A stretch of DNA of 64,000 nt, from contig JBLDXI010000036.1 of assembly GCA_047495785.1 (NCBI GenBank), forward strand, positions 806,001 through 870,000. Reading direction: 5' to 3'. The notes under the pieces were generated by a model that saw nothing but the letters and a program-made list of their open reading frames with translations, made no database searches and had not been told where the DNA came from. The DNA comes from Lepidodermella squamata (lineage: Eukaryota > Animalia > Gastrotricha). The translations under genes and the position numbers were made by a program. Below are positions 11,531 through 55,208 of the stretch, in pieces. The stretch's first letter is position 1, and each line of letters opens with the position of its first letter.

Positions 11531-11891
11531 TTAATGATCTGCTGGTCCGCAATATTTCACTTTTACAGCACTTTTGGCCGTCCGCCACCCCCATACGCCT
11601 TTGCCTCCACTTAGTCTGGTGCATTCCTCACTGGCCTCTTCCTCCGGTTGCCATTCTGCTTCGCGACCATGACCTTTGGGGAAGCAAACTGTGCTCGTCT
11701 TGCCTTTGATTGTGATTGTTTTCCACTCGCCAGGCCAGCCCTTTCCATCAAAGCATGCACCACCGCCAGCCACTGCAGCAACTAGATTAGCCTGTTAGAT
11801 AAAACTTGAAATCAATGGAGAATTATCTCTTGCATGCAAATTGTATCTTACGAATTACGAAAGGAGCAATGATTAAAACAAGCTTAGCCGT
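11531..11891 (-). pseudogene. MAKL-family peptide precursor A; start codon is ACG
   Basis: Exons 11891-11859 ((T)AKLVLIIAPF) and 11791-11531 (ANLVAVAGGGACFDGKGWPGEWKTITIKGKTSTVCFPKGHGREAEWQPEEEASEECTRLSGGKGVWGWRTAKSAVKVKYCGPADH*). Family 5'UTR (ctcgaaacat) and 3' hairpin present. Confidence 0.7.
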
Positions 11892-12258
11892 GATGTTTCG
11901 AGAGTTTTCCACGGTGGTGAAATACGAACTGGATCAACGAACTTTGGGGTTTCAGGCTCAAGATTGTATAGCTGAAAGTTCCGAGAGTGGTAAACATGAG
12001 CCCCAGGTCGGGCCTGTCCATGGGTAGCCTTTGAGGGATCGGAGACCACAGCCTAAGAATGACGCAAGAAGTTTGAAAATCCCTGTAACAGAGGCTTCTG
12101 TTTTTACTAAGAAGGTCGCGGAGCTTAAAAAACGATTTCTGATTTATTTCTAGTAATATTGTGACGGTAATAATTACTGGCATTACGATAGGTTATGGTG
12201 TAGTTGAATTCTGCTTTTCCTTAACTTGAATGTTTTTTCGTTGAGATGCCGTGTTCAA

Positions 12259-14244
12259 TCAGCATTCAGCAAGTTCATTGGCCCGAGTTGCACCGCGAGC
12301 CGTTAGCAGTTCGGCAACTTCGGCATGGCCACGGCAAATCGCCAGGTCGAGCTCTGATCTCCCCTCGCCATCAGTCACCTGAGCATTCGCACCGCGCTCC
12401 AACAACAGGCGTACGACCTCGACGCGCCCATTGTAGACCGCCATGGTCAACGCCGTCCAGCCATCCTTAGTCTTAACCTCCATGTTCGCGCCTTTGTCCA
12501 ACAACAGACGAACTAGCTCCAGTTTGTCATTAGCGGCTGCCTTCATCAAAGCCGTCCTGCCGTAGATATCCTGGACGCCAATGTTCGCCGCGCGCTCCAG
12601 TAACAGCTGTGTCGTCTCGGCGTACCCATAGTTGGCTGCCCACAACAACGCTGTCCAGCCTGTGGGATCCGTGGCCTCGATGTTGGCACCACGGTCCAGT
12701 AATAGGCGCACAACCTCGGCATGTTTGGCCGCCATAATCAGCACTGGGTGTCCATTGTACTCTGCCTTGGCTTCGATGCTCGCGTTGCGCTCGACCAGCA
12801 GTCGCGCTACTTCGACATGCCCCTGGTCGGCCGCCAGCATCAACGGCGTCAAGCCGCGGTCTTCCACGGCATCGAACTCCGCCCCGCGATCAGCGAGCAG
12901 CTGAATAATTTCCAGCCGTTGCTCTGGTTCGCGCGTCACACACTGAGTTAAGCGGTGAAGCAGCGTGCCGTTTCTAATCCAGAACGAAGGACAATATTGG
13001 TGTAGCCTGGGATCTCGCCAGTTCGGGTCGAAGTTGCCGTCGGTTGCCGCGTCGATGGCCGCCACAAGTCGCCGCGCCTCAGTCACGTTCAGGGCCTCGC
13101 CAACTGCCGCTGACAACTCCTCATAAAGCAGGCGTACCTGAGTAGATTGAAGAACAAGCAACAAGAAGTGAACGGCGGGGTTTGACGAATAAATGTTTGC
13201 CAACCAAGTTTTGGATCATGAGTTGTCTTTAAAGATGCGCTTAAAATTCAATTATATTGAGCTAAATTGTCAAATTTGTTGGAATTTCAAATTGAAATTT
13301 TCAAATTTTTATAATATAAATTTTCAAAAATCGAAATAATTAAATTTTAAATTTTTAAATTTTCAAAAATCGAAATAATTAAATTTTTAAATTCCAATTT
13401 CCGTAAATTGAGATAATTAAATTTTTTAATTTAAATTTTCAAGATTCGAGAATGTCAACTTTTTAATTTCAATTATTATGCTTACATATATGTCGACTAC
13501 AGCAGTTTGTTTTTCGGCCTTCGCCACTTCCAATGGCGTGAAGCCGTTTTTGAGTTTTGCGCTCTCGAAAGCACCTTTGATTTTTGCGTTCTTGTCAGCA
13601 CCTTTAGAGAGCAAAAAGAGAACGGCGTCGACGTTCCCCCGACCAGACGCATAGAACAATGGCGTGATGCCATCCTTAGCCGTAGCCTCGATGTTCGCCT
13701 TGTGCTCTAGCAACAAGCGTATAACGTCAACGTTTCCGCTGTAGGCCGCCTGATGCAACGCCGTGAAGCCATCTGTATTGGCATCGATGCTCGCATTGCG
13801 CCCCAGCAGCAGCCTCACTGCTTCGACGTGCCCATTCGCGGACGCCGACATCAACGCCGTCCAGCGTGAGTTACCTTCCTTCGCATTAACATCAGCACCA
13901 CGATCAATGTAAAGCCGAGCGATTTCTAGCCGCTGCTCAGCTTGCCGTGACGCTTCAGCACATTGCATCAAGCGGTGAAGTAGCGTGCCGTCTTGTAGGT
14001 AGAATGGATGTTCGCATGTGTTGTGTGAGTATGGATCGATCCAGTTGGCGTCGAACTGGCCGTTTGACGCTGTGTCGATCTCTTCCACAAGTCGCTTCAC
14101 TTCAGTCACGTTCAGAGTCTCCCCACTTGCGGTAGACAATTGCTCATAGAGCTCATGAATCTGTGTAGGGAGAAACAGATAAGTAGGATTCAGTGCGAGA
14201 TCTCGAGTTCTCCAGTTTGCGGGGAAATACCCAATGAAAATCAT
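12259..14244 (-). CDS. Ankyrin-repeat protein(s): two paralogous modules, either one spliced gene or two genes
   Basis: Repeated G-x-T-[PA]-L-x-x-A motifs. Both modules start LYE.LS...LNVTE..RLV..ID.A..G.FD.NW.DP...C...GTLLHRL.QC. A phase-0 donor after 13486 and acceptor before 13137 are compatible; 5' end uncertain. Confidence 0.75.
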
Positions 14245-14419
14245 GGTCCAGGAGATTGAATATTAAAATCGAATTTAAAATTTTGGAAAATTTTCAAATT
14301 TTGAAGTTCTGTGCAATTCAATTTCAGTTTCAGACTCTGTACAATTTAGTGTATCGAAACTTCGAATCGTATCGAAAATTTTCATTTTGATTATATGTCG
14401 ATCAATCGATTGGGAAATG

Positions 14420-17973: not shown

Positions 17974-17991
17974 TAATCTTCTGATGAGTAC

Positions 17992-18103: not shown

Positions 18104-18389
18104 ATTCTATTTTTTGTCAACTTTGTTGTGCACAGTTTGATCAAGCCCAAACAAATCCATTGTCTTTTTTACAGCTGAGCTTTCCAACTTTTTCTAAAAA
18201 CGGATGAATGGCTCTTAAATATTAAATAAATAAATATTAGCTCCTGCCGGTTTTATTCATTCATTATAGGCAAGCGCCAAATGGGTAAATATTAGCAACC
18301 ATGTGCAGGTGGCTGTATGTGACATCGCCCTGCATGCAACGCAGTAGTCACCTCATCCCTCCATTTTGGCCGATTTTCTCCGATAGAAT

Positions 18390-18735
18390 TCACTTTCCTA
18401 TGGCCTCGCAAATCCTTTCCGTCCGACGTATAGGAAAAATGGAAATTTCGCGCGTTTTCCATTCACCTTTCTGGCCATACGCGTTCGTACATTCCTTGGG
18501 AGGAGCTGGTGTTTCCTGGTGATCGGCAGAATATTGCATGCATTCACCTCGCCTATTACGATAGACGCAATGACGGGCCGCTTCTTCCGGTTGCGATTCA
18601 CCTTCGCCAGCGTAAGCTGCTGCGACAACGAGAGCAGCCTGTTGATAAAGGAATGTGAAATCAGAGGGGAATTAATAAAAGATACTGCATATTCAAACTT
18701 ACGATAAAAGCGATCATTAAAACAAGCTTCGCCAT
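18390..18735 (-). CDS. MAKL-family peptide precursor B
   Basis: Exons 18735-18703, 18638-18390: MAKLVLMIAFI|AALVVAAAYAGEGESQPEEAARHCVYRNRRGECMQYSADHQETPAPPKECTNAYGQKGEWKTREISIFPIRRTERICEAIGK*. Canonical gtaagt...aacag intron. Confidence 0.85.
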
Positions 18736-19296: not shown

Positions 19297-19605
19297 GCCG
19301 ATTTTCTCCGATAGAATTCACTGCTTTATTGCCCTGGATTTCGCAAAAGGTTACTGTGCGAACGTCAGGAAATCCGGTTGTAAAGATTGGCCTTGGCTTA
19401 GCGCTAAGCCAGTTCAATGACAGTTGTCCTTATCCAGGCCGAATGTTGTTACATGTCAATTTTGTCGATATTCCCGTGGATACTGATACTGTTTTATTTT
19501 GCAATTCTTTCCGCACATCCATTACGAGTTGAATTATTTTACTAAAACTACTCGAAACATATCATGTATCATGTCTTGGCGAAGCTTGATTTAATTATCG
19601 CGTTT
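19297..19605. pseudogene. MAKL-family fragments C: 3' coding end on minus (19297-19375), promoter and decayed exon 1 on plus (19385-19605)
   Basis: Minus strand reads GFPDVRTVTFCEIQG; plus strand has tggcttagcgctaagcca and ttggcgaagcttgatttaattatcgc. Confidence 0.65.
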
Positions 19606-20035
19606 CGGGTATTGGACCGTTTTCAGTAGAGTTTTGCCGCGTAAACCTGATCAATTTTTAAGTCTTTTTCAGTCTAGTTGATAGATAATACACTTCAATA
19701 AAATGAATTTCTCAGAATTGGAATTTCCGCCAGGTTGCTTCATTCTCCCTGCCGATCATGCACGGACTGCTTGTGAATATTGGCATTGGCTTAGCGCTAA
19801 GCCAGTTCAAACGAATTTTTTCATTCCCCAGGTCGAACTCCGTCCTAATTACGGGTTTAGTTAACCTGGCTAGATGTCACGTCAATGTTGTCGACATTCC
19901 CGGGGAAAGTATATTCAGCTGGCCATAGCTGGATGAGTGCTATTCGAAAGGCGACCCGAAGCTTATTTCATTCTTTTGTTTTCGCACTTCAATAACAATT
20001 TGAAATATTTTACTAAAACTACTCGAAACATTATC

Positions 20036-20335: not shown

Positions 20336-20822
20336 CATGAAGCTTGTTTTGGAATCACTTCTACTCATCAATAACAAGTGTGAACTTCAAACTGTTAAGG
20401 AATTCGCGGACAGGGGTTGGTCCCCCCGTCGTTACTGCAGCAGCTATTGCCAATATATACACTGCAAAACTGTCTGTAGAACTATTGCTGTATAAGTAAA
20501 GCATTGCTGGCCAATGTAAAAAATTCATACGAAAATCCGATTGAACCCAAATCATGTGTGACAAATTGATGAATTAGAGAAAGCATGAATCATATTATCC
20601 AAAAAACGTGAGGTATTCGCAGGATGTGGCTTCTCATCGCTTTTAAATCTCAAATGAATAGGGGCCATAATTAGATACTACGCCTGCTAAACACTGCAGA
20701 TTTTATTGAATACAGACAACGTGGTAGTTATACACATCAGCAGCAATGTCCAGATTCTCACGTGACATCGCCCTGCTTGCCGTAGCTTGCAGCAGCCATC
20801 TCATCACGCCCTGGTTGTCAGA

Positions 20823-21251
20823 TCATCGTTTCGCAGGCACACACTGACGAAAGCTGAAACCATTTGGGAGTTTGACCGTCTTCCATACGCCTTTACTGCC
20901 ATTTTTTCTCTTGCATTCCTCACGGGCCTCTTCTTCCGGTTGCGATTCTGCTTCGCGTGGCTTGGGAGGCTTGACGCACATTTTATGTTTGCCGCCATAT
21001 TTGTCTGTGTACGTTTTAACTACACCTTTCTCGCCTGCCTTGTTTTTACATTCTCCGCCATCTCCCGGCGCCGGTTGGGATTCAGCTTTGGTAGGTATGG
21101 CTGCTTTGCCGCCTTTGCCCGCTCTTACACCGTAAACTGCTGCGACAACGACAGCAGCCTATTAAGAAAGACATCAGTTGAGAATTATCAGAGATACTGC
21201 ATAGGTATTACAACTTACGATAACAGCGATCATTAAAACAAGCTTCGCCAT
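20823..21251 (-). CDS. MAKL-family peptide precursor E (two-peptide precursor)
   Basis: Exons 21251-21219, 21158-20823: MAKLVLMIAVI|AAVVVAAVYGVRAGKGGKAAIPTKAESQPAPGDGGECKNKAGEKGVVKTYTDKYGGKHKMCVKPPKPREAESQPEEEAREECKRKNGSKGVWKTVKLPNGFSFRQCVPAKR*. Confidence 0.85.
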
Positions 21252-22111
21252 GATATGCTTCAAGTAGGTATAGTAAAGTAATTCAACTTGTTATTTAAGT
21301 GCGAAAACAAAAGAATGAAATAAGCTTCGTTTTCCTGCCCGAACAGCACTCAGCCAGCTGCATATACACTCCCCGGGAATATCGACAAAATTAACGTGAC
21401 GTCAAGACTAGGTAGACTGAACCAACAGATAGGAAGGGGTTCTGGCTGGGGACGTTAGCTGAGTGCCTAGCCAATGTCAATCTACGCAAACGGCTCAGTC
21501 ATGCTCGGGTGAGGAGGATGACGCTGCCAGGAGGATTTTCCAATCCTGAGGAAGTTAATTTCCTTTAAGTGTATTACCTGTCCAATCCGGAGGTTCCTGG
21601 AGGAGCAGTATGTGTTAGGGAGCAAGAATTTCGGTAATAGAAAGTAACGATTCAATCGGTCCAAGTTCAGCCAATTCTGGAATCTCACCGCCCGCTTTGA
21701 TATCCAGTTGATTCAATGTAAAACATGCCTATTTCCCAAGCCTCACCTTTAAACCTATAAACATGTTAACGAATGGCTGGGAAGCCTCTGTGAAGACCCG
21801 GTGTAATATTTTTTTAAAAGGTGGATGAACGTCGGGATCGTATATAATCTCGTGGTGCTTTTGCCCTAAAGATTCGGGCGGAACTTGGTTGGGGTCTACT
21901 GGACCTTTGTTGGTTTCACGAGAAATCCTAGGATACAAATTTGAGAAGAAATTGAGAAGAAATTATACATAAGCTACTGCCAATTTTATTCATATCAGAG
22001 ACAAATAACCATGATAAAAAAATCAGCAGCTAAATGCAAATTGTTGTGTGACGTCGCCCTGCAAGCGCAAACTCGCAGCAGTCACCTCATCCTATGCCGT
22101 TAGCGCTGCAC

Positions 22112-22426
22112 TCAAACTTTCGCCATTGTTGGATAATATCCTGGCTCGACAACTAAGCACCACCGCTTCCCATTGACATCACCCCATTTGCCAGGTCGGC
22201 CGTCCCTCAAACAACCATCTTTTCCCATGCAGATCGTCTTGCCACGGTAAGCCGCCTGCTTACCTTTGCATTCTGTTACTTGGCCTGTTGCTGTAGGCTC
22301 ACTGATGGCTGCTGAAACTGCAACAAGAGCAACCTATAGAGAAAATTTGCGGCAATTATTTAATTAATGGATATATTGACAATTGAAACTAATGATCACT
22401 GCAATGATCAAACCGAGCCTTGCCAT
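22112..22426 (-). pseudogene. MAKL-family precursor F; canonical splice donor mutated
   Basis: MARLGLIIAVI followed by attagt instead of gtaagt; exon 2 22333-22112 is open: VALVAVSAAISEPTATGQVTECKGKQAAYRGKTICMGKDGCLRDGRPGKWGDVNGKRWCLVVEPGYYPTMAKV*. Confidence 0.7.
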
Positions 22427-22659: not shown

Positions 22660-25010
22660 GAGATGATGTGAAACGAAAGTCGTGCAGCATTCCGCAGTCC
22701 ATATCGCTGTATATCCCGCACCCAATTTACTGGCCGCTCGCACCTGGTGTCGTTCCCGGCGGGTCCTAACGGCTTATCGAGCACCAATTCCGAAATTTTC
22801 GCACTTGCTAATTTAATATAAACAATTTTCGATTGCGAAAAAAACGCGCGACGTGTGGACTCCAACGAAAACGGCAAGTTGCTTCCAAATTCGCGAATTT
22901 TTCTACGGTGGCACCTTGATGAACTCTTCAAGCGCTTTCACGAAGACAAAGGCCACCCCAAACGTGACGCTTTTTCGAAGAAGTTGAAGGAGCGCTACTT
23001 CTCTGTTCCACAAGGTAATATTTTTAAGGTGCGCAGAAATTTAGAGAAATTTAGTGCCCGTTTATTTTGATCTCATAGACCTCATAATGGATAAAATCAA
23101 GAAGTGTACTGTTTGCGCGCAAGGGCGAGCTTTGTCGAAGAAACCAGCTGGTAAACCGATCGTCGCTACTGGCATTTGGCAACGCTGCGGCATGGATCTA
23201 ATCGATATGACGTCTCATGAAGCTCAAGGCATGAAATGGATTTTCCACCTGAAAGATCACTTTTCCAAGTTCACCTACGCTGAAGCGATGCCAACGAAAG
23301 AGATGCATAATGTCGCCGAAAAGATGTTTCCACCTGTACTCGCCGTGTCGGATTCTTCATCACGACTGCGGAAAGGAATTCACAGGTTCAGCGGTCCGCG
23401 ATGTTCTGCGAGAGCATTTTCCTCAGGTGTTAACTGTGAAGAGCCGACCTCGACACCCCGAGTCAAATGGCTTGATTGAACGGGCGAATGCCACCCTGGA
23501 ACAAGCAATAATGTCAAAAGTGAATGCTGGCGATACCGATTGGCCTAGTTATTTACCTCAGCTTGTTTATGATATCAACAACCGCCACTCTCGAACAATC
23601 AATGATTCGCCGTCGCATCATCCGTGTTCTTTGCTCGGACAATGCTTTGGGAAGGTGAGGAAACAGTCACGGAAACCTTGAAAAACATCCCGCTGGATTG
23701 CGAAGATTGGGTCCCTGATGAATCCGATGAAAGTGTTAAAGATGTGATGATGTCCTTGAATAACCTCGCATTATCTCGAAGCTCGACCGAAATTCAGCAC
23801 GAAACCGATGACGGTAACTTGACTGAAGAAGATACCGCCACGGAGACTGAAGGGGAAACTGGCAACGAGACAGAGTTTGAAACTGGAACGGAAACTGGAA
23901 ATGAAGGCGACGTTGAAACTGAAGGTGAAGCGGAGGGTGATGCTGGTACTGGGGGTGAAACTGACCTTGGCACTGAAAACGATTTCTGCCCGACTGGCGA
24001 GAGCGATTTTGATTATTCGGAGCCGATAAAACAATCACTACAAAATCCCGTCAATGACTGCGTCACTGTTTCGCTCCGTCCGAAGTGTCTGGATGAATCA
24101 AAATGAAGGTTGTCAAATCGGGGAAGACGTTACCAATCTTGAATTCCCTAATGCTGGTTCTGTTGATGACCATATGCCCGGTTACAAGAGTGATTTCCTA
24201 TCTCCGCTGGATGCTGGAATACAATTCCGAGACAGCAGAGGACTTTGGGTGCTTTTTGACGAAGATCGACAAGAAGTGGCCGTTGGTGAATTCGTCGAGT
24301 TGCGAAATGGGATTTTCAAGATAGTAGAAATCGATGGTTCGCGCTGTCAGATTGGCGACTCCCGAGGCGTGCTAGACGGTTGGTTTCTACTCGACGAGGT
24401 ATTTTAATAATAATTGTTGCGGTCGATCCACTCTAATATAATACTATTTTTCAGTTGCATTTTTGCGAAGCCCCGCAGAACTTTCGAGTGCCGCTTGGCA
24501 AGTCAGTTGCTGTAACCACGGCGTTCCAGCATCAAAGCGGATTCGAAAAAAAGCGGCCGAAAAAGGATAATGACGCCGAAACCAAACCAGGCGACGACCT
24601 CAAGAAACCGAGACTAGCGGCAAGAAAAACACTGTGCAAATGTACGAAGGGCTGCGGGAAGGGTCCATGCTTTTGCAAACAAGCAGGGCTCAAGTGCGCA
24701 ACTAAATGCCACCCGGGCGTTGCCTGTATTAATCGCTAATCGCTGTATTAATCGCTTCTTTGACTGATCATTGACACTGTTTCAAAAAATTTCAGTTTCC
24801 AGTTTTCGATTCACCATGCTTTAATTGATAGGTGTACTAATAAAGGATGTTAAATGTTGCGTGTTCATCTAGCGGAAAGCAATTCAATATTTCGATAGTA
24901 TTTGAATAGGCCGCGGAATGCGCGCAATTGCAATATATTCAATATTTAGCGGAACGCGTGATCCGCTAGCGGAACACGCTTTCCGCTAAAACGCGTGTTG
25001 CGCTACGACA
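22660..25010 (+). mobile_element. Ginger2/TDD-like DNA transposon with retroviral-type integrase; frameshifted, left end not found
   Basis: H-x4-H...CTVC zinc finger, MDLIDM, KDHFSKF, HHDCGKEF, HPESNGLIERAN; introns 23015-23078 and 24399-24454; C-terminal CKCTKGC...CFC...CATKCH. Ends ...cgctacgACA at 25010 with subterminal tagcgga/tccgcta inverted repeats. No RT or LTR seen. Confidence 0.7.
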
Positions 25011-25676
25011 TATACACAACTCGAACGCCATCTCATCAGAGAGATTTCATCAGTCATGGACCGTGTTATTGTAGGATTCAGGTCACAAATTAGCTAAATA
25101 CGAAGCTACATCATCATGAGCCCACAATTGCGAGTAATGAAACATAGTCCTCCAACTATGATTAGCAATTTTCAACTGACAATAGGAATCAGCGATGAAC
25201 TTGAAAATCTACCATGTCTACCATGACACACAACCGGTTCTCATTCCTCACCAAATGGTACTTATCGGAGGATTACTTGGTCATTCTGAAAAATTATTGC
25301 TCCTTGGGTTCTCTCCTACTACACCTTTCCTGTCCTAAATCTGAATTTGTCCTGCAATTACATGTTGTTTTCCTTAAAATTGTCAAGCTGCCCTCTCTTG
25401 GGCGTATGAGCTTCAAAATAAATAAATAAATAAATTTAAATTTCTTTTTCCGATCTGACAAAGTCAAATAAAACGTGCGATAGCCATCAGCCCGAGAGAC
25501 TTCGTACGCACTGCGAGTTAAACAAAGGAATGTATTCCAGCAGGTTTTATTAATTCATTATAGACAAGCGCAAAATGGGTACATATCAGCTATGCAGATG
25601 GTTGTGTGACATCGCCCTGCTTGCAACGCAGCAGTCACCTCATCCCTCCATTTTGGCCGATTTTCTCCGACAGAAA

Positions 25677-26030
25677 TTACGGCTTTTTGGCCTGGATTTC
25701 GCAATACGTTACTGTGCGAACATCAGGAAATCCTTGTTGGACCGTTTTCAATACACCTTTCTCGCCTTTCTCGTTCGTACATGCCGTGGGAGCCGCTGGT
25801 GCTGCCGGTTGCGGTGGCGGTGGTGGTGGCAAGTTGAACTGCCATTGCTCGCACAAACCCGATCTCGTCCGCTTGATGCATACGGGTTGTTGACGGGCCG
25901 CTTCTTCCGCTTCGGCATTGACTGCTGCAACAGCGAGAGCAGCCTGTTGATGAAGAAATTAGTGAAAGATAAATTGATGATACAGCGTAGGGCAACTTAC
26001 AACAGCGATAATTAAACCAAGCTTCGCCAT
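25677..26030 (-). CDS. MAKL-family peptide precursor G (same protein as H and I; upstream promoter truncated)
   Basis: Exons 26030-26001, 25943-25677. Confidence 0.8.
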
Positions 26031-27518: not shown

Positions 27519-27872
27519 TTACGGCTTTTTGGCCTGGATTTCGCAATACGTTACTGTGCGAACATCAGGAAATCCTTGTTGGACCGTTTTCAATACACCT
27601 TTCTCGCCTTTCTCGTTCGTACATGCCGTGGGAGCCGCTGGTGCTGCCGGTTGCGGTGGCGGTGGTGGTGGCAAGTTGAACTGCCATTGCTCGCACAAAC
27701 CCGATCTCGTCCGCTTGATGCATACGGGTTGTTGACGGGCCGCTTCTTCCGCTTCGGCATTGACTGCTGCAACAGCGAGAGCAGCCTGTTGATGAAGAAA
27801 TTAGTGAAAGATAAATTGATGATACAGCGTAGGGCAACTTACAACAGCGATAATTAAACCAAGCTTCGCCAT
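27519..27872 (-). CDS. MAKL-family peptide precursor H
   Basis: Exons 27872-27843, 27785-27519: MAKLGLIIAV|AALAVAAVNAEAEEAARQQPVCIKRTRSGLCEQWQFNLPPPPPPQPAAPAAPTACTNEKGEKGVLKTVQQGFPDVRTVTYCEIQAKKP*. Confidence 0.85.
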
Positions 27873-29621: not shown

Positions 29622-29653
29622 TTTCTGTCGGAGAAAATCGGCCAAAATGGAGG

Positions 29654-29692
29654 GATGAGGTGACTGCTGCGTTGCAAGCAGGGCGATGTCAC
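29654..29692 (+). promoter_or_regulatory. Conserved 3'UTR stem-loop of MAKL genes
   Basis: gatgagGTGACtgCTGC-loop-GCAGggcgatGTCAC; homologs on minus at 11467-11510, 18319-18357, 20762-20805, 22048-22091, 25606-25644, 27448-27486. Confidence 0.55.
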
Positions 29693-38300: not shown

Positions 38301-41300
38301 ACTGAAGTTTCAGCTGAAATGGAACTAGCTGATAGTCATCAAGCTGCTATAGATGCTGCAACTGAAGACACGACTTCTGCAACTCAGCTTAAAGAAGCGG
38401 ATGTCTCAGATGAAGCAATCATCCAAGAAACATCCGGTACATCTGATATAGTTCATAAAGTAGACGAGGCCGCGCAATCGTTGCTTGAAATCTCATCAAC
38501 AGCTGATGAGCCAACGGCCGTCACTTCTCCTAGCGAAGGTCCAAGCCAAGGCGAATCTGCAGAAATAATTCAAACCGATGTGATTCCAACCACGCAAGCT
38601 GATCCTACTTCTGCAGTAGCAGAGATTCTCGTGGAAAATAAGTTTGACGATGATGTTACCTCGAATCTCACAGATGCTAGCGAAAACGAACCGGTGGGAA
38701 ATGCTCGAGCAACCAATCAAGCTGAAGCTGGAAAAGCGGAGGAGGATACCTCAAAAGGATCGGTTGATGATAGGCTCGAAGAGCAAACAGCAAAGTTGGA
38801 CTTCGCTCACGAGGAAGATCTTGAGAAGACCGAACAGCCGGTAGCTGAGCTTTCTTCTCATCAAGCTCCATCTCAAGAGAAGACTGATAACAACAAAGAT
38901 CCTGTCGTTCCGACTTTGCCCGAGGAAGCTGCAGTTGATGCTGAGCTGTCTGTTCCAGTCGATTTTGCTTCGAAGGGCGGTAGCAATCTTGATGAAGATA
39001 CTAAAATTGAGGAAAATGTTGATTTACCTCTCGAAGAAATGCTGGTTGAACGCCCGGGGCCGGTCGAAGAAACCTCTTCTCACGGCAAGATGGATGAAGT
39101 TACTGGTCAAATCGAAGTTGCAGCTCAAGATGAGTCAGCGGATAGCTATCAAGCAACCTTGGATGCTACAACTGGAACCTTGGTGGAAGAAGCTGCTGCC
39201 TCAGATGAAGCAATTATCCAAGAACTATCAGATTCTCCTGTAGCTGAGGACGAAATTGCTGCTGTAGAAGATGAGACGGCGCAACCATCAACAGCTGAAA
39301 AACCTATTGGAGAACCAGGCCAAGGTGAATCTGCGGAAATAATTCAAACGGAATTTCACGACATTCGAACCACGCAAGAGGCTCCTGCTTCTACAATTAT
39401 GGAAATTCCAGCGGGGAATGAATTTGCAGATGATGTTCCCCCGAATCCCACAGATGCCTGCGTAAACGAGCCGGTGGTAGAACCTCAATTAACGAGCCTG
39501 GTCGAAGCTCGAGAAGTGGAGGATGTTCTGGGCACTGAAGCTATCCGACCTCCAGAATTCTATCAAGAGATGAATAGTTCTGAGCCCAAAGATTCCTCAA
39601 TTGCCGAATTTCCCGATCTCAGCGGAAATGTAATTCCTTCAGATTCTCAAGCAAAAATCAGCATTCAGTCAGAAAATGTAGAAGAAATCTCAATCACGGA
39701 TGACCAACTGCCTGTAGATGACACGCAGCCGGTGATTGAAGAGCCAACCATCATTCAGTCTCAAGCAGTTCCTCTGGGGAATGACGATTGCACCCTGCCT
39801 CCTCGTTCAGTTGAAGTTGAAGACACAGTAGATATTCCAGAACAACAGTCGAGCCACGAGGATTCCCCCTTGGAGCTTGCAACAATCGATTCGGGAGAAA
39901 TTGCAGAGCCCAAGAAGTCATCGGATGAGTCAGAAATTACCGGTCAAGAATCGTTCCCCGACAATTCCGGGAAAGAACTGGACAGTGAATCAACAATCCG
40001 TGATTCTGATTCTGTTGAGAAGGTAGATCTACAAGCTAAACAGGGAATCTTGCCTCTCCTGCAAACATCATCTGATCTGGATGTTGGCGGATCGACAAAT
40101 AAATCCGACGCACTCGATGCTGTGTTGTCTGAAATTACGACAAAAGAAGAAGCAAAAGCGGCGCCTGGAGAAGAATCGGAGACACTCGATGCCCCAGCGA
40201 AATCGGAGGAGAATTTAAAAATCGAAGAAATGAAACCTGATGAGATGGGGGTAAAGGCTACAGACCTAGCCTCAGATGATAATGCCCAGAAATTTGAGGC
40301 TGAAATCGGAGAGCTGAAGGTGGCGACTCAGGATCATCTCGACGAAACACTCTCATCACCGAGTCGGGCAGAAATCAAAGCTGAAATCGCCGAGACTTAT
40401 TCCGCCCTGATGGAAGAGAAGATGATGGAGGCTCCTCTTGAGAAAGGCGATGAAGTCGATGTCTCGAGTCTCGAACGACAAATACCGGCCGATTATTCAA
40501 TCAATGAGCCTCAAAGAACTCCAAATGCTGCTCAAGACTCAGCCGAAATAATTCAAGAAGAACTGCCTATTGATGAGCCATTTGACTCTGCGGATATCCC
40601 GAATCCTGGCGGAGCTCCAGTAGAATTCTTCGATGATGAAGATGATCTACCTCAAGCTAGGGCGAGCTTCAGTGATGATTTCTTTGATCAACCTGATGGC
40701 AATCTTCAGCCGAACCCTGAGCAATGGCAAGAGCCGGACGGTTCATCCACAACTGAGTTGGTTTCAATGCAAGCGTTATCGCCTTCAACAGACGGACCTC
40801 TGGAGGGAGATGAAGATGGCGTCCCAGAGTCGGCCGGCGAGGATGATTATTCACGGGCTTCGGTAAGGGTCTTCGAGAGATCAGAGACGTCTTCTCCTGA
40901 AAAACTCGATGAAGCGGATCCCATACAAGAAAAAGTCGTTACATCAGCCGAGGCTGGGGAAGAGATCAATCCTCCACCCCCCGATCACAGTGAGGTTCAA
41001 AAGGGATTCGAGGATAATACTGCCCCGGAAAAGGAGGATTCCCCTAGAAATCTCAAGACCTATTCGACGGTTTTGAAACAGGCCAGTGGAATCCCGCGTC
41101 CAACTTCCCCGATCTCCCAGCCTATCCCGATCAGCCCACCAATGCAATCAAGGCTGGCGAGTAACATTCCAAGGCCAGCTTCAAGGCCGATGTCTCCAGA
41201 ATTAGGTCAAAAGGTTCCTCCTATTCAAACTGAACCTCAATCTCCTTCTGATTTTCGAGAGAAGGAGGTTGAGCGAACCTCGGAGATGCTGGTCGAAAAA

Positions 41301-41504
41301 AGCCAGTCGAAAGTCCAGCTCGACGTACCTGGTCTGAAGGTTGATGATCCTGAAAAGAAAAGCCTCGCTAGCTCGAACGAGAGCGTGAATTCAGCCGATG
41401 CCTACTTCAGTGCTGCGGAGGAAGATGACTCGTCGAAGCCGTCAAGCAAGCCAAGTCTAATTCCTGTATTGAAACCTGATACTAAGGACAGTGATAAAAA
41501 ATGA
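32308..41504 (+). CDS. SH3BGR: SH3BGR-family protein with giant acidic disordered extension (~2880 aa, 5 exons)
   Basis: Exons 32308-32352, 32407-32592, 32982-33077, 33134-37808, 37864-41504 splice in frame (8643 nt). N-terminal MAIRIFSS...QQRHLFDILQTKKIAYDEIDI...IPPQIFSGDAYCGNYEDF...LWTFLRL matches the SH3BGR thioredoxin-like domain. AATAAA ~41653. Confidence 0.8.
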
Positions 41505-46360: not shown

Positions 46361-46611
46361 ATGGCAAAACTGGCTGTACTTCTTGTCGCTGCTCTGGTAA
46401 GACTTGGCTAACTTTTCTTTTCAGACGCACCTGAATGGCGTAATTTTCTCTACAGGTAGCTAGTTTTCTAGTGATGGGCGCCGCTAGCTTCAGTGCTAGC
46501 GATGCTGCAGCTTGGATTGGCAAGGAATGCGTCAGATACAGTGGCAGGTCGGGTGTGTTTCGATACAACTACAGTATCAATAAGCTTGAGTGCGTCGCTA
46601 GAAGCGGATGA
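46361..46611 (+). CDS. MAKL-family peptide precursor J (divergent, single module)
   Basis: Exons 46361-46396, 46456-46611: MAKLAVLLVAAL|VASFLVMGAASFSASDAAAWIGKECVRYSGRSGVFRYNYSINKLECVARSG*; AATAAA ~46722. Confidence 0.8.
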
Positions 46612-46836: not shown

Positions 46837-49800
46837 GAGCAGCGTCGATATCGATGGTTTTGCGCTAAAACAGGCCAATAGGCTGCATTGAGATATACGC
46901 CCATAAAAACTGTGCGGAGTATATGCGAGTATATGGTTATACACAGGGCTAATAGCATTTTGGTGCATGCGCAAGAGAATGCACTCAGACGAGAGCGATC
47001 GATTCTTCCGCAGTAACATGGTATATTTGCGTATTTTGTTCTCTTGTTTTTTTCACTTTTATCATCATTCTTTCTTAGATCTCCCGCATCATTTTTGCTG
47101 AAAGTAGGACATTGAAAGCATGCGCTTTAAATTACCCACGATTTTAGTAATTCTGACCTGATCTGTTCATGGAACGGAGTAGGAATGTTTTCCATAGTTG
47201 TCCATTCTAAATCGCAGTAGAATTTTCTTCTAGAATGATTAGAATCTCCGATAGATTGATGGAGGCTTCTTATCAGATTCTTAAGGAGTTTAGTGAAATC
47301 TGAGCTTACCGCAAAGTTAAACTCCTGTTTTGAGATTATAGCAAAAATAGAGTAGAAAGGTTGTTTTGGCTGAGATTCCGAAAGTGGCTGCTGGATACTC
47401 TGTTAGGAAAATATTCCATTATTTCGTTGTTGTGGCGTTTATCAAGCTGATAATGTGGTTTGGGCCCCTGGATAATTTGAAACTATCGCCCTTTTCCTCA
47501 AACAACCACCTACAAAACACAACACAACTTCTGATCAAAGATAGAAAGCCAAGTTCGTCGGTTTGGGGCTCAAACTCCGCCTAGAACTTGACAGCTAGTT
47601 AGACGGAAACTGTGGACTTATCGATCGTTCGTGAATCCTACAATCTACTTACGGTCGAAGGTCGAAGCCTTACGAACAATCCAAACAGTCTCTTAATTAG
47701 GTGTAACCAGAAGTACTCTTTATTGCCTTTTAAAATTTAGCATTTGGTATCAGGCGCATGCCATCTTCACAATGCTTAGGAGCCGACTATTCCCATGATT
47801 GCTTTGGCCGCTGAGTAGCCACATCTTTAATCTTTACCATATATTACCGGTGAATGGCGGCCCATACCAGAAGGGAGGAGTTACTTGGCGGTGTTACCCT
47901 TCCTGTCAACCCTTCCTGTCAGCTTGATAAACGCCGCATTCAATGCATAGATGATTGATATTGCGGTTATTGGGATTGAACCCGGTGCTTTTGAGATGCC
48001 TAGGCCGCTCGATCACATGCTACTCACGTGCCAGGGTCAGCTTTTATACGACTGGGATAACCCCATTCCAAGTTTAAACTGCTGCAGTTAAAACTAACGT
48101 GATTCATTGGAATTTAAGGTTTATGTTTTGGCTTATAAATACCTTTCACAGCAATATACAAAGTGAACCTATCGCTTTGTTATGATATTTAAAACTCCCG
48201 ATTACTGGCCACTTTAACTACTTAACTTAGTTGGGCCATCCTTCATCGGTAGCTGTAAATCTGAGGTAATACAGCCTTAGATCAAGAAAAGAACTTCTCA
48301 GATTGGCAATTCGGCTTTCGACAACTCCCCTGTTTTCTATCCTTGAAATTCTAATTTATAACGCTTGTATCACATTTAGGACTAAAGCATTCAACGTTTC
48401 ATTATTAACAACGATTTGAGCTGATGACTGATAACGACAATTGGGTGAAACAGTTTCCTCCGAGGATAGTGGATTCTAGACACCGCCCATCCAAACAAGC
48501 GATGGAAAGAAAACTCAAGCGCAACTCTGGGAAACCCTACCGTCAGTCAGATAAAGGGGTTAGCGCTAAGTTTAATTCCGGTCGTAAGCCTGTTTACTTC
48601 AAGTGTGGTTGCTGGCGTAAATGCTCCTTGAAATTCAATGAAAATTCAGTCAAACAATGCTTTAACACTTACTGGTCCCGAGCATCTATCGACGCTAGAC
48701 GAGCATTCATCAACCGTTACGTCAGTTATAAACAGAAACGAGAGAATGGTCCTCGAAGATTTGATTATTACTTACCAGGCAACTACTTGGCAACCCCTTC
48801 GCCTTCACAATCTAGGGACTCAATCGAAGTATGCAGGTCTTTCTTTCTGAAGGCGCTCGATGAAACTCGCGCTTTTATAAACACAACTGTTGAGAAAAAA
48901 GTCGAAGACGGCTTCTACATCATACCAGATCAACGTGGTCGCCATAAGCCGCCAAATACCACCAGCGATAATGCTTACAAATTTGTTTATCAGCACATCA
49001 CTTCTTTCGAGCGATTAGACAGTCATTATGCGAGAAGTCAAGCTAGCAAGCAATATCTCGGGTCCGCGCTCAATCTGAGGGAAATGCATCGAATGTACTG
49101 TATAGCACACCAAAACTGGACTCTGCGTACTGATGCGAAACCCGTCAAATACGCTACTTACCGATCCATATTCAAGAGATCTTTTCCCAATCTCGCTTTC
49201 AGTCATCCCAAGAAGGACACCTGCAAGAAATGCACACGATTTGCGACTTTGCCGGATGAACTGTTCACCCATGAAGTGATCGTCGAGAAACGGAACCACG
49301 AATCCAACAGAGACGCTGCAAGAGATGCCAAGAATGCTGACAAAATTCTAGCAAAACAGTCGAAAGGATTGATCTTGTGCATCCAGTTTGATATGCAGTC
49401 AATCCTCGAAAGCCCTTGCTGCTCGATAATGTACAAAAAAAAGTTCCACACCTCAAACCTGACTTTCTACGATACTTCATTAAAAGATGTCTACTGTTTC
49501 ATGTGGGATCAAACAGAAGGGGGTCGTGGGACGGATGAAGTTGGTTCATGTCTCTATAAATTCATCACTGAAATGATTCCTGGAGAAGTTGAGCAGTTGA
49601 TTTTATGGAGCGACAGCACTGGAAGCCAAAACAAATCTCAGTACATTGTCAACGCTTTATTCGCGGCCTTGTCCAATTGCAAAGGTAATCTCAAAGTCAT
49701 CGATCACAAGTTTTTCGAGCCGGGCCACTCGCAAATGGAATGTGATTCCGTGCATGCCACTATTGAAAGGGAAGCTAAGAAACGAGTCAACATCAGCTAT

Positions 49801-50689
49801 TCAAAGGAATGGAGAGAAATCGTGGCCGCGTCGCGGAAGGCTCCGATTGATGCTGATCTGAGACTTGAAGTGTACGGCGAGGAAACACCAAACCGCTTGA
49901 AAGTGAAACCATACAGCATAACTGAAATGCAATTTTCAAGCTTCTTCAGCTTTGACAAGTCACCAAAGTTCGCTCAGTATTTGCAAGACGAACAGAAAAA
50001 TGATGTTAAATGGTCGGAGCCATGTTGGTTCAGATACGAGAAAGACTACCCTAATTATCTCCAAACCAAGAAAACTTTTGACTTGGCTTTTCATACTTTC
50101 GTCGCCAAGCGCTACAACAAAGACGTCATTTTGTTTCCTTTCCAACTTGTTCAAAAATACGAAAAGCGATTGCCGATCGAATCCAGTCTTAAGAAGGATC
50201 TCATCGAAATGGTCAACAAAGGCACCATTCCAGAAGCTTATCGCTCAGTCATAATGGCTTACGAAGAAGACGCAGACAAACCTACTGCCTGCAGCATTGA
50301 CGCTAACTCTCCGCCGTGACATTAGGCCCTCGAAACTTGAAAGGATATGACTAATTGAAAGCGTTTCAGAATTATTAAAACAAGCTTATTGTTGAGAGTT
50401 TAAACTGTGTTTTACTCGAGCTGTCTAAGAACGATTCAGTCCATGAGTTTCTGAAACGTTTCCGCCATGATTATCTCGGAATTCCCAGCGCAGATACCTC
50501 AGAATGACCGCAATATCGAAGATATTTGTCGGTCATTATTTGTCCAGTACATATATTTTTTTCACACAGAATACAGTGGGCTATATCTTACTATATGTGT
50601 ACGTAGTACTATTTATAGTGCGTAGTACTCTGGATAGGAATTTTTTTCGTTGGCTCCTTATAGCGCAAAATCATCGATATCGCTGCCTC
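46837..50689 (+). mobile_element. Sola1-like DNA transposon, full length
   Basis: TIRs gagcagcgtcgatatcgatggttttgcgcta / revcomp gaggcagcgatatcgatgattttgcgcta; 4-bp flanks aagt / aggt; contains the transposase. Confidence 0.7.
48424..50319 (+). CDS. DDD/E transposase, Sola1-like, intact 631 aa
   Basis: Motifs FDMQ, WDQTEGGRGTDEVGSCL, WSDSTGSQNKS, GHSQMECDSVHATIE; upstream PKKDTCKKC. Superfamily assignment is from recalled motifs. Confidence 0.8.
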   Translation: MTDNDNWVKQFPPRIVDSRHRPSKQAMERKLKRNSGKPYRQSDKGVSAKFNSGRKPVYFKCGCWRKCSLKFNENSVKQCFNTYWSRASIDARRAFINRYVSYKQKRENGPRRFDYYLPGNYLATPSPSQSRDSIEVCRSFFLKALDETRAFINTTVEKKVEDGFYIIPDQRGRHKPPNTTSDNAYKFVYQHITSFERLDSHYARSQASKQYLGSALNLREMHRMYCIAHQNWTLRTDAKPVKYATYRSIFKRSFPNLAFSHPKKDTCKKCTRFATLPDELFTHEVIVEKRNHESNRDAARDAKNADKILAKQSKGLILCIQFDMQSILESPCCSIMYKKKFHTSNLTFYDTSLKDVYCFMWDQTEGGRGTDEVGSCLYKFITEMIPGEVEQLILWSDSTGSQNKSQYIVNALFAALSNCKGNLKVIDHKFFEPGHSQMECDSVHATIEREAKKRVNISYSKEWREIVAASRKAPIDADLRLEVYGEETPNRLKVKPYSITEMQFSSFFSFDKSPKFAQYLQDEQKNDVKWSEPCWFRYEKDYPNYLQTKKTFDLAFHTFVAKRYNKDVILFPFQLVQKYEKRLPIESSLKKDLIEMVNKGTIPEAYRSVIMAYEEDADKPTACSIDANSPP

Positions 50690-51323: not shown

Positions 51324-53583
51324 TCATTGCAGATATTGGCTTCCGGGCTGTAAAGCAGTGCGTGATGATGCTTCAACGCGAAAATCTGAATGGCGCTTTC
51401 GAAGTATCAAGCTGTGAGATGCCGAAATAACAATCAGAAATACAGATAAAATGGTATCATATTGAAAACTAGGCGCCATAATGTAACCAATGGCAGCAGA
51501 TGCGCAAAACAAAGTTGCTGTAATCCCCATCAAAGAATTACCCATTTTGATAACTGGCTGCTGCCTAAAATTACGCATCATGGCTTGTAGTTTCAGCGCA
51601 AACATCAAGCCAATTAGAATCAGGGCAAAGTTCAGTGCGACAAGAGAGCCAACCCAGGCCGATGCTTGCTTAGATTGGCACAACTTCCACTGCCGTATTG
51701 TGTAAGCATCGGCAACTTCATCATAGAAAGCGTATGAATCCGAAACTAAATCAGCAGATACCGGGTCCACAACTAACCAAGCCAAGACGATTGCGAGATT
51801 TATAACTGTATAGATGACCGTGAATGAAGCCTGGCGAACTTTTCCGATTTCAACGTCAATTATAAGATATTTTTCAGACTGAACTGTTTGAAAAGAGGCA
51901 AATGAATTCATTTGAGGCTCCCGCCCACGCCTAATGTTGTTGTGAGGTCGTAGAACAGCGTAGTAATTTGCAATCAAAATAACTATGCCAATTATGAACG
52001 AGGAAACTCCGCAAGTGATAACAACAATCGCGAAGCTACAAACTGCATCTGAGCGTAAATTGAATGGCGTAGAAATCAGCGGAACGGACAGAGAGAGACA
52101 GAAATAGCTGATGAGTGAAATTGCATTCCTCGCCACATCTTTTCTTCTCTGTTTAGCCATGAAAACAGCTTGTAAAGAGAATAATGTGATCGCAGCAACC
52201 GTCAGAATGGCGTAAACGGATAATGGCTCTCCTGTAATCACATGAACCACAGCAGGCGAGTCACGAGGTATCAAAGACGCGTCGACGGGTTGAACTGGTT
52301 TGAATAGAAGAATATTCGGCTCCTTAAAATTCGTTGAATTTGTTAGCACAGTTCCGATGTATCGAACAATTAGGCCGTTGCCCTGTTGCCACGTCATAAC
52401 AGCTTGAGGCTCGTAGTCCCACTCCGCGCGGTTCGAGTAATGGAAAATTGCTGAATCTCAAGCTTTCGTAACGAATCGAACGAATCGTTTGGTTCGCAAC
52501 TTTCATGACGAGCCCCGGATGCTTCTGGTAATCCTTCAGGCTCATGTTGAGCGTCGATAACTTTTTCTCAGTTTCATTCAATGCGACAATAGCTTGAAGA
52601 GCTGCATCGTAGCAGGCAGTGCGAAGGGTGTCGCCCGATCTGGATAGATTTTGCCCTCTTTCCGTCAAGATTCTCTCGAACCCTGTTTGAGTGTTGCCCA
52701 ATGCGTCGATTCGGGATGAAGAAACCGGCGCAGCATCGATAGAGCCAACGACAATCACTGATTTTAACTGCTCAATGTAATTCTCCCTGGAGCAACCGCT
52801 AGGATAGCTCTGACCAGGCGATGGTTCTAAAAAAGCAGCCGATTGGATTAAGAACGTAAATCGTCGCCCTGTTATCCCGTTTTTGAACGCTTCACATAGA
52901 AACAGTTGCGAAACTCCCGGCTCTGAAGTTTCCAACGTGAAGATTCTGACGTCGTGATTTTTGAAAATATGCATAAATTCATCATTAAGATCAAGAAATG
53001 CCTCGAAAGGTTGGACCTTAATCCCGTTAGCCGCTGCAATTTCATGGAAAAATATGCCAGTTTGAACGGAAAACACGTTGCTCAAGTCCACGATAACTGC
53101 CAACTTTTTCCATGGTGTGAATTGCTTGATGAAATGAAGACGAGTAACCAGGCCCAGCTCTATCGGGCCTCGAACTCTGTACATGTTAGGGTAAAGATCG
53201 CGTCTGGCTGTCTGGCTTGGAGCAGTGCAAGACGCGCCTACCATCACCATATTCGTATGATTCGCAATCGGCCCCCAAGCTTTGCAACCAGGCGTAACGA
53301 TTGGGCCAACACTTATTGGAGATTTGTACGCTGGCATGTTTTGATCAATGAATTTTACGCCCTCTGCTGCGGCGTTGGCGGTGTAAACTTGCTCGTCGGT
53401 GTGCAAGAATTTGACTTGGTAGCCGGGGAGTAAGTTACGCTCGTTGACGATTTCTCCAACCAAATTGACAGCGAAACGGCATCTGTCAAAAAAGGAGGGC
53501 AACTGGGCGAGAATCACCAGTTCGCTCTGGTTCTGAGTATTGGCGCGATGTATCAACGTAAAAAACAACAGCAGTTTATCCAT
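51324..53583 (-). pseudogene. Second GABA-B-type class C GPCR with a single +1 frameshift
   Basis: ORFs 53583-52324 (signal, VNERNLLPGY, SVGP) and 52397-51324 (7TM). Removing one base of the A4 run at 52444-52447 joins them. Confidence 0.8.
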
Positions 53584-54099
53584 GTTATCAAAAGAAAAAC
53601 TGCCAACTGAATCAATGGTAAATGAGACTATTTACGCCGTAACAAGACTCGTTGAATCTATGCTTTTTGCATAAGCAAGAAATTTGGATTTCGTTGAAAC
53701 TTGTTCCTCGGCCGAAGGGTGATGTTTTGCTCATCCACGCTCATCAATTAGGAAGCACGTAGGGTGTGTCAGCAATTAGCCATAGATGTCAGTGAGCGCT
53801 TGTTCAGAACGTTGGCTTAACGTTAATTAACCCTCTCAAATCGTTTCGCCAACGTAACCCACGGATGCACACACAATCGTATGTGGGTGGGTGTTTATAT
53901 ATCCCTTCCCTGTTGGAAATCCTTTCGCCTAACGCCTAACGCTAGATGCAGGGATCAAATATCGACCTAAATCTTGCGCTTAGATAGCTATAACATTCAT
54001 CAATATTTTTGCCTATAGTGAACCTCAGAAATTCAAAATTTTAGGAATAATTTTTTACTTTCGAGCTACCATAATGCTTGCTACATATAATTCGTAATG

Positions 54100-54410
54100 A
54101 CCTGATATATCCTGCTGCCTGTAAAGATAAATGTGGTATTCATGAGCATTTAACATAAAAAACAATCCTAACCCTTTAAAGTCTTTAAAACCCTTTGAAA
54201 CAATAGCTGAGGCGAGCTTTGCCATGAAGTGAGAATAATTAATGCCAATGAAATTATATAAAAGAGATGAACGAATGAACAATGGACGATGGATGGTAAA
54301 GTTGTTGTAAAAGCTCGCCAAAAACATCTGGGTAAACACTCGACTGGTAAATCGATGATTCATGCGTGCAGAGTTTAATACCAACCGAGTACATAGATAA
54401 CATATGCGGG
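54100..54410 (-). pseudogene. Decayed MAKL-family copy K (promoter plus MAKLASAIV)
   Basis: 54205-54410 aligns with 55188-55375 (cattaattattctcacttcatggcaaagctcgc); coding similarity is lost soon after exon 1. Confidence 0.6.
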
Positions 54411-54885
54411 GTGTCTTTTTGCAGCGGCAATGAAAACTATACTGCTGAAAATATAAAACTTGAAAACAGAGAAATCGATACGTTTGTTGTTTGCATTCAA
54501 TCCGTTTTTTTCATGGCCTTTATTAACGTATTACTCCTGGAAACAGTCAACGAAGTATGGGGGTTTTTGTGACCAAAGGGTCCCCCTGTTTTCGTGTTTT
54601 CCACCTTGGCCCTACAACTGGGGGCTCGATACCCCTCGATACCCTTTCTTTGCACATTCAATAAAATTAAGACGTATAACTGAAGGTTTAGACTTTATAC
54701 TCATTGTTAATATTGAGTCTCGAGGATTGATAATAAGCCAATATTGATATTAAGCGACTTTTATTTTATACATCTGATGAAAACAGCTCTTCTCGTTAGA
54801 GATTCTTCAATTTCTCCCTTCCACAGTATGACCTCAACAGCTTGCATTTCTCGCGCCTCACTTCTTTTTTTCTTAGCCCTTCTCC

Positions 54886-55208
54886 CTAGCGCCTCGGCAT
54901 CCTACCACTGCTGCGCTGCGCCTCCATCAGGTTAGCTTCTGCCTCACGCCTCGGCCTCCGACCAGAAATGCTGCGCTGCGCCTCCATCAGGTTAGCTTCT
55001 GCCTCACGCCTCGGCCTCCGACCAGAAATGCTGCGCTGCGCCTCCATCAGGTTAGCTTCTGCCTCACGCCTCGGTCTCCGACCAGAAATTCCGTCACACG
55101 CAACGACGGCAACAACTGCCTATAACAGAAAATTGCTCTCTAAATCAGATTTTAAGAAAAGCTCCAGACCCATACCATAAAAGCAAGAGCTGATGCGAGC
55201 TTTGCCAT
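54886..55208 (-). CDS. MAKL-family multi-copy peptide precursor L
   Basis: Exons 55208-55176, 55119-54886: MAKLASALAFM|AVVAVVACDGISGRRPRR(EAEANLMEAQRSISGRRPRR)x2 EAEANLMEAQRSSGRMPRR*. Confidence 0.8.
54910..55089 (-). repeat. 3 x 60-bp coding tandem repeat
   Basis: Near-identical units (lines 54961 and 55021 differ at one base); encodes the spacer+peptide unit of precursor L. Confidence 0.9.

Follow-up and report, generated by a model that had tools for sequence, protein, structure and literature searches.

A candidate family of small secreted-peptide genes with a split signal peptide and a two-cysteine mature module in the gastrotrich Lepidodermella squamata

A 64,000-nt stretch of the genome of the gastrotrich Lepidodermella squamata (GenBank assembly GCA_047495785.1, contig JBLDXI010000036.1, positions 806,001 to 870,000 of the forward strand; hereafter the window, whose own numbering is used throughout) was analysed with regard to twelve loci, A to L, which a sequence-only reading had described as a hidden family of two-exon peptide-precursor genes (MAKL, after the first residues of the products). 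The analysis points to a lineage-restricted family of secreted peptides that evolves by birth and death and possibly functions in defence, and this overall reading is, on balance, the one we consider probable. That the loci are real secreted-peptide genes is highly likely from their sequence, and the family, with products predicted to be secreted and disulfide-closed and with an evolution of the birth-and-death type, is very probably undescribed. The general description given earlier, namely small genes for secreted precursors in which the signal cassette is conserved and the mature part diverges fast, with pseudogenes being frequent, was borne out.

Loci and Gene Models

All 12 loci were recovered at the coordinates from which the analysis started, which mark the stop codon for minus-strand genes and the ATG for plus-strand genes. 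The number twelve nevertheless needs qualification, as eight of the loci are intact genes (B, E, F, G, H, I, J, and L) and, since G, H, and I encode one identical 98-residue precursor, these account for six distinct products. The loci are the following:

11531-11891, minus strand: locus A, two tandem Cys-loop modules; exon 2 (11531-11791) open, canonical start codon lost
18390-18735, minus strand: locus B, intact, 93 residues; signal peptide, acidic segment, 10-residue Cys loop, linker, and Cys-loop beta module
19297-19375, minus strand: locus C, remnant 1; 3′ end of exon 2 and a fragment of the 3′ untranslated region (UTR), 89% identical to G/H/I
19505-19607, plus strand: locus C, remnant 2; promoter/5′UTR and exon-1 fragment, no canonical start codon
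20036-20335, plus strand: locus D, pseudogene; exon 1, intron, and promoter block retained
20823-21251, minus strand: locus E, intact, 122 residues; two tandem Cys-loop modules with an acidic spacer between them
22112-22426, minus strand: locus F, probably intact given an alternative in-phase donor, 82 residues, four Cys
25677-26030, minus strand: locus G, intact 98-residue precursor; copy 1 of a tandem duplication
27519-27872, minus strand: locus H, identical to G (copy 2 of the duplication), with full promoter block
29268-29621, plus strand: locus I, inverted copy of G/H encoding the same protein
46361-46611, plus strand: locus J, intact 63-residue precursor with one two-cysteine loop
54041-54225, minus strand: locus K, degenerate; exon 1 and upstream sequence (to 54407) 79% identical to L
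54886-55208, minus strand: locus L, intact 88-residue precursor of a different type; signal peptide and three 20-residue repeats

Several loci depart from the common design. Locus A is without the promoter block shared by other members and without an AATAAA within 300 nt, and is probably defunct. Locus C is composed of two unrelated remnants on opposite strands, while exon 2 of D, when compared to G, contains about three frame-shifting indels and three premature stops. In F, no canonical donor is found at the position usual for the family, and an in-phase GT is located two codons upstream. The junction of the duplication cuts the G promoter 105 nt upstream of the ATG. Locus K has neither a consensus donor nor an L-like exon 2 and keeps only the exon-1 and upstream part that it has in common with L.

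The exon-1 pattern ATGGCNAARCTNG, allowing at most one mismatch, matched the window 14 times as compared to 2.44 matches expected, and none of 100 shuffles reached 14. Twelve of these matches fall at the loci listed above; those at 5704 and 35852 were attributed to chance, the latter sitting within a large unrelated open reading frame (ORF). When both strands were scanned blindly for secreted cysteine peptides encoded in two exons (ATG, donor, intron of 40-99 nt, hydrophobic N-terminus, and an even number of cysteines), genes of the MAKL family were the only ones returned.

The proposed exon structure held in all interpretable copies: the first exon is short (9-12 codons) and starts with Met-Ala-Lys/Arg-Leu, and the splice models place a phase-0 intron within the signal peptide. 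This intron is 56-66 nt long in the intact genes, as compared to 67 nt in A, and begins with GTAAGT, GTAAGA, or GTATGG; in a seven-way DNA alignment the donor and a CTRAY-like branch site are kept and the AG/G acceptor is invariant. Exon 2 is a single coding exon, open for 51-111 codons, and AATAAA lies 111-133 nt past the stop codon in each of the eight intact genes, the outlying J and L among them. The warning that the ORF track is misleading here also proved justified, as the long ORFs of this region run antisense or out of frame. Those of at least 110 residues overlap B, E, G, H, and I and neither A nor F, and since they accompany some of the paralogues only, they are not conserved. Families of this kind escape standard ORF tracks owing to the very small size of the genes and to the interruption of the signal peptide by an intron.

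Shared Non-coding Elements

Members of the core cluster (11.5-29.7 kb) share a promoter/5′UTR block, which A lacks, and a 3′UTR motif, located as follows:

27873-28007, minus strand: promoter/5′UTR block of H, with equivalents upstream of B, D, E, F, and I
25606-25644, minus strand: 3′UTR motif of G, two invariant arms around a variable loop
11467-11510, 18319-18357, 20762-20805, 22048-22091, and 27448-27486, minus strand: other copies of the same two-arm motif
29654-29692, plus strand: a further copy of the same two-arm motif

The shared 5′ block gave seven matches against 0.00 expected. In six core genes (B, D, E, F, H, and I), a TATA-like box is located about 116-132 nt upstream of the ATG and an ACGTCA/TGACGT half-site at 150-165 nt upstream, the promoter elements of E occupying positions 21367-21404. 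The full TGACGTCA palindrome occurs as a single copy in the window (21397), upstream of E, and 7 of the 30 half-sites in the window are found upstream of family members when the C remnant is counted. The 3′UTR motif, 39-44 nt in length, is present in seven core genes (seven matches, 0.21 expected). It is better conserved than the coding sequence. As an RNA structure it was rejected: a hairpin can be drawn, but no pair covaries, and Rfam gave no match for the motif or elsewhere in the window. Judging from these elements, the predicted transcription unit is compact, about 0.6 kb, with a TATA-like box and a half-site resembling the cAMP response element, about 100 nt of 5′UTR, two exons, and AATAAA.

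Signal Peptide, Mature Modules, and Predicted Fold

Exon 1 and the first 10 or so codons of exon 2 encode a classical signal peptide, consisting of Met-Ala-Lys, a strongly hydrophobic stretch, and small residues. According to a hand-written rule, used rather than SignalP, the signal core of the seven models has a mean Kyte-Doolittle value of 2.5-3.4 in the best 12-residue window, and candidate (-3,-1) cleavage sites are present at residues 16-30 in seven of seven.

The number of cysteines is even in A, B, E, F, and G, with four each, and in J, with two. The precursors of A, B, E, and G/H/I combine acidic stretches with a cationic module of 24-28 residues bounded by two invariant cysteines; A and E have two modules in tandem, and in B and G/H/I the module is accompanied by a proline-rich linker and an additional cysteine loop of 10 residues, rich in arginine. 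Alignment of eight module sequences revealed four invariant columns (Cys, Gly, Gly, and Cys), followed by valine, tryptophan, lysine, and threonine columns, each kept in five of the eight. Hidden Markov models (HMMs) built without the gene under test recovered A (E = 8e-11), E (2e-9), B (1.4e-5), and G (5e-4) among 2,303 window ORFs, and no other ORF of that set scored with the module HMM. Two further candidates were rejected as module homologues. J, in which the Cys/Gly/Gly/Cys spacing is kept, reached a leave-out E of only 0.35, and F was not significant once it was left out of the model; both flanks of F are common to the core family, and its mature part is not significantly similar.

The AlphaFold2 model of the module is a three-stranded antiparallel sheet (mean predicted local distance difference test score, pLDDT, 85.4) with strands at residues 4-6, 12-19, and 25-31, in which the two cysteines are placed on the outer strands. 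The small loop of G is predicted to form a beta-hairpin (pLDDT about 90). The net charge of the loops ranges from +1 to +7, all being cationic, and that of the whole secreted part from 0 (B) to about +12 (E). These data modify the earlier picture of hypervariable, cationic Gly/Lys/Cys peptides in two respects. The loops are indeed cationic, but the mature parts are not free-form strings, being built of the predicted two-cysteine beta-sheet module and acidic spacers; and although the mature part is the most diverged region, a conserved module is recognisable in A, B, E, and G/H/I.

Duplication and Divergence

G and H are contained in a 1,844-bp tandem duplication whose copies are 100% identical. 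The transcribed block of about 590 nt differs at one base between H and I, while the sequence immediately around this block differs by 10-20%; this supports gene conversion, which is likely for the non-coding flanks of these genes. Three pairs of blocks around G, H, and I are 100% identical and represent either very recent segmental duplications or an assembly artefact:

23689-24594 and 30708-31613 (906 nt)
24292-26135 and 26134-27977 (1,844 nt)
26134-26436 and 31311-31613 (303 nt)

The ORFs at 23606-24103 and 30568-31122 in these duplicated blocks have no Pfam match. Exon 1 is the most similar region between core paralogues (80% identity), ahead of the 5′ block, intron, and 3′UTR (63-67%), and the mature part is 50% identical, with an additional 29% of gap columns. 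The ratio of non-synonymous to synonymous substitution rates (dN/dS) between B and G is about 1.0 in the pro and mature parts and about 0.5 in the signal; the other pairs are saturated, and the paralogues are too few for site models.

Homology Searches

The earlier statement that no described family is recognisable agrees with searches of Pfam, of PDB by sequence and by fold, of two very large protein sets, and of DNA by pattern, all of which were negative. In Pfam, the seven exon-2 products gave no family match at E up to 10, toxin, conotoxin, and frog signal/propeptide models included. With E as query, a word-indexed set of 5.8 billion proteins yielded no relative, and an HMM profile of six exon-2 products found no credible homologue among 1.84 billion representatives. 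The sole profile hit (P0121, E = 1.5e-4) was rejected, as it is a translated 28-nt satellite in a microsatellite-rich contig. This satellite (L010, 3085-3474, 13.9 copies), which a gene caller had turned into a repetitive protein, weakly mimics the Cys-Gly-Gly pattern of the family, and the match is one of chance. Profile search of PDB returned unrelated proteins, the best at E = 0.25, and the best Foldseek match in PDB had an E of 1.1, with none at or below 0.001 and no toxin fold among the matches. The exon-1 and donor pattern and the 3′UTR motif had no match in metagenome contig DNA, the DNA pattern scan of prokaryotic genome contigs gave none either, and a literature string search for the family peptides was likewise without a match. 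Protein databases under-sample genes of this type, since gene prediction seldom captures very small genes whose signal peptide is split.

Locus L

Locus L and the remnant K are, as judged from their sequences, of a different product type, with repeated units and predicted amidation-type sites. L encodes a 20-residue unit three times over, in 60-nt repeats that are 98-100% identical; every unit closes with Gly and clustered arginines, and the single cysteine of L is located in the signal region. Tandem units ending in Gly and basic residues are the canonical layout for prohormone convertases and amidation; L has this arrangement of amidated multi-copy precursors, the processing itself being predicted. 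Its only ties to the other loci are the position of the intron, the length of the 3′UTR, and the first four codons, and no homologue of it was detected. Homology of the repeat unit with the acidic spacers of A and E was considered and rejected, as it was not significant against shuffles (p = 0.19-0.34).

Genomic Surroundings

The window has a G+C content of 43-44%, its genes are animal genes with few introns, and no rRNA, tRNA, or Rfam features were found in it. Ten long window ORFs had no counterpart in a 15-billion-protein collection. The following neighbouring features were recorded:

2335-2919: ORF weakly resembling a rhodopsin-type seven-transmembrane receptor
4539-7004 and 51324-53583, minus strand: two divergent, near-intronless class C receptors, most similar to GABA-B receptor subunit 1
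12259-14262, minus strand: one or more ankyrin-repeat genes with 99-nt periodicity, adjoining locus A
33134-41501, plus strand: two consecutive ORFs of 1,565 and 1,219 codons, very acidic, of low complexity, and with a strong A-over-T skew
38187-38697, pairing with 38997-39477: internal repeat
48424-50319, plus strand: intronless ORF of 631 codons with a Lys/Arg/Cys-rich N-terminus
62695-62968: five 48-nt tandem units, 62-100% identical to the reference copy (82-nt comparisons), within ORFs that overlap on both strands

The second GABA-B-like receptor is distributed over two ORFs that overlap, so that a short intron or a frameshift is implied, and a protein search with the GABA-B-like receptor gave no match at 1e-10. 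No Pfam match was found for the acidic ORFs, and none in Pfam or PDB for the 631-codon ORF, which may be derived from a mobile element. The window also contains a PAN-domain ORF and an NRF-6-like acyltransferase, the latter 30-34% identical to proteins of molluscs, a brachiopod, echinoderms, and a rotifer. Its best matches (39-45%) are on ENA metagenome contigs (L001-L005; ERZ27332993, ERZ27333047, ERZ23486764, ERZ23486787), which have a G+C content of 38-40% and few introns and carry genes for MADD, CoaE, a sugar transporter, and a cyclic nucleotide-binding protein. The position of these relatives on intron-poor animal contigs points to an unsampled lineage of small-genome animals in environmental samples. 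The genome that the window comes from is accordingly taken to be a compact one, of an animal that lacks close annotated relatives. No MAKL-like gene was present on these contigs, and a scan of prokaryotic genomes with the NRF-6-like acyltransferase returned bacterial acyltransferases only.

Interpretation and Alternative Explanations

In the mechanism proposed here, the products would enter the secretory pathway and be released as disulfide-closed mini-proteins, which, after removal of the signal peptide, would act outside the cell, most likely as effectors of an antimicrobial or anti-fouling type. The acidic segments may neutralise the cationic modules until release. Tandem and inverted duplication, duplication of modules, and decay to pseudogenes would constitute the birth and death of the family, while conversion or constraint would keep the 5′ cassette and the UTRs alike and the mature part would change fast, with indels. 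The venom, antimicrobial, or gland-secretion function suggested in the sequence-only reading was drawn from analogy only, and a role in host defence is a possibility that we put forward tentatively, as the best guess.

Several observations weigh against a defence family. There is no homologue from which a function could be carried over. The secreted products of B, G, and A are close to neutral overall (net charge 0 to +2), which is atypical of strongly cationic antimicrobial peptides, and the core family has no dibasic site between the acidic segment and the module, so that the presumed propiece may be retained. Synonymous sites, too, have diverged far more in the mature than in the signal part; the contrast between the two cannot be assigned to positive selection alone, and conversion of the flanks may explain part of it. 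Finally, the MgCRP-I peptides of Mytilus showed no antimicrobial, antifungal, insecticidal, or cytotoxic activity (PMC4558851), and since they follow the same evolutionary pattern, this pattern is not diagnostic of function.

The loci could instead encode signalling precursors of a neuropeptide- or hormone-like kind, whose secreted products are ligands. Locus L fits this explanation best: cleavage at its basic sites would release three short peptides, each with a glycine-derived amide, as suggested by the nearly identical units with their terminal Gly and arginines, and the single-disulfide loops of the core members would be cyclic hormone-like peptides. The several genes for G protein-coupled receptors in the window are weak circumstantial evidence in the same direction. 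Yet the core modules are preceded by acidic residues and have no flanking dibasic or amidation sites, and signalling peptides are normally conserved, whereas here the mature part evolves faster than the rest of the gene. Defence or effector families are, moreover, the more typical setting for clusters of many copies with pseudogenes and identical recent duplicates, and L itself is without detectable relatives, all of which makes signalling rather unlikely for the family. Less likely still is a combined account, in which the two-cysteine module is a new host-defence fold in a poorly sampled lineage, conversion and a conserved regulatory hairpin in the 3′UTR keep the rest of the gene uniform, and the signal cassette has also given rise to the neuropeptide-like L. 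Were it true, a defence-peptide gene and a signalling-peptide gene would visibly be of one origin.

The products could also be peptides resembling venoms or toxins, made in a specialised gland or cell type, directed against prey or predators, and diversified in an arms race with their targets. As in toxin superfamilies, the signal is conserved, the mature part, framed by cysteines, diverges, and the loci include tandem duplicates and pseudogenes. The modules have one disulfide each, compared with at least three in most scaffolds of animal toxins, and neither a Pfam toxin family at E up to 10 nor a toxin fold in PDB was matched; this origin is improbable. We regard as equally improbable that the products are structural or matrix proteins of mucus, tube, house, cuticle, or adhesive, assembled through charge-patterned modules and proline-rich linkers. 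Acidic and basic segments do alternate, the linker of G/H/I is rich in proline (15%), and A, E, and F contain much Gly and Lys, but the secreted products are tiny (37-101 residues), long low-complexity repeats are absent except in L, and the fast divergence of a folded module is unusual for matrix components. A dispersed non-coding repeat or transposon fragment with accidental open frames would account for the non-coding flanks that the copies share in both orientations, and for the further open frames, antisense ones included, that some copies have. Against this, the phase-0 frame that continues the signal stays open for 51-111 codons in six diverged paralogues, whereas the antisense ORFs are not conserved; the cysteine and glycine columns are invariant and the cysteine counts even; leave-out HMMs give significant scores; splice sites, branch sites, and the distance to the poly(A) signal are kept; and the units, with their conserved reading frame, have no terminal repeats around them. 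This explanation is essentially excluded.

If expressed, the preferred family of secreted, disulfide-closed peptides would represent an unannotated group of mini-proteins with a new small fold, in a lineage without a close annotated relative. Identical duplicates, a converted inverted copy, module duplication, pseudogenes, and a member with a different product can be seen side by side in the cluster, which makes it a compact natural example of the reuse of a secretory cassette. Such families are common in invertebrates, and no general concept is changed by this one.

Comparison With Known Systems

Antimicrobial-peptide genes of anuran skin are clustered, include pseudogenes, and encode a similar signal, an acidic segment, and different mature peptides (PMC13128954). 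The genes described here resemble those of ranid and hylid frogs in being small, clustered, and accompanied by pseudogenes, in the contrast between similar signals and varied mature parts, and in the acidic segment after the signal. In frog precursors, however, a Lys-Arg site precedes a mostly linear helical peptide, whereas the MAKL precursors have no dibasic site and a predicted disulfide-closed beta-sheet; their intron, in contrast to the frog genes, is inside the hydrophobic core of the signal, and no sequence similarity to the frog signal/propeptide family was found with Pfam.

The likeness to the MgCRP-I and myticalin families of Mytilus is closer. Like the genes described here, both are multigenic and restricted to a lineage, with a conserved pre-pro region, hypervariable mature peptides framed by cysteines, precursors that hold several modules in one exon, a signal peptide that contains an exon boundary, recent duplicates, and pseudogenes (PMC4558851; PMC5577615). 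MgCRP-I genes differ in having four exons, a phase-1 signal intron, a six-cysteine array, and a dibasic site, as compared to two exons here, with the intron in phase 0 and each module with two cysteines, and no sequence similarity between the two was found. Conotoxin superfamilies likewise combine a conserved signal with a rapidly diverging, cysteine-framed mature region, but cysteine frameworks, gene structure, and organism differ and Pfam gave no match. Amidated multi-copy precursors, both of the neuropeptide type and the multi-peptide antimicrobial precursors of insects, are comparable to L only, through its tandem units with Gly and basic residues; the L units would be anionic to neutral after trimming of the basic sites, and no homologue was found.

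Neither PDB profile search nor Foldseek revealed similarity to a solved defensin-type or other cysteine-stabilised antimicrobial peptide. Compared with the single-disulfide beta-hairpin defence peptides of invertebrates, the modules have no sequence or fold match in PDB and form part of longer precursors that also contain acidic and proline-rich segments, but the disulfide-closed hairpin predicted for the short arginine-rich loop (10 residues) of B and G/H/I, and the cationic beta structure predicted for the main modules, recall those peptides. The kind of system is a familiar one, and its resemblance, by analogy, is to peptide families of the defence type.

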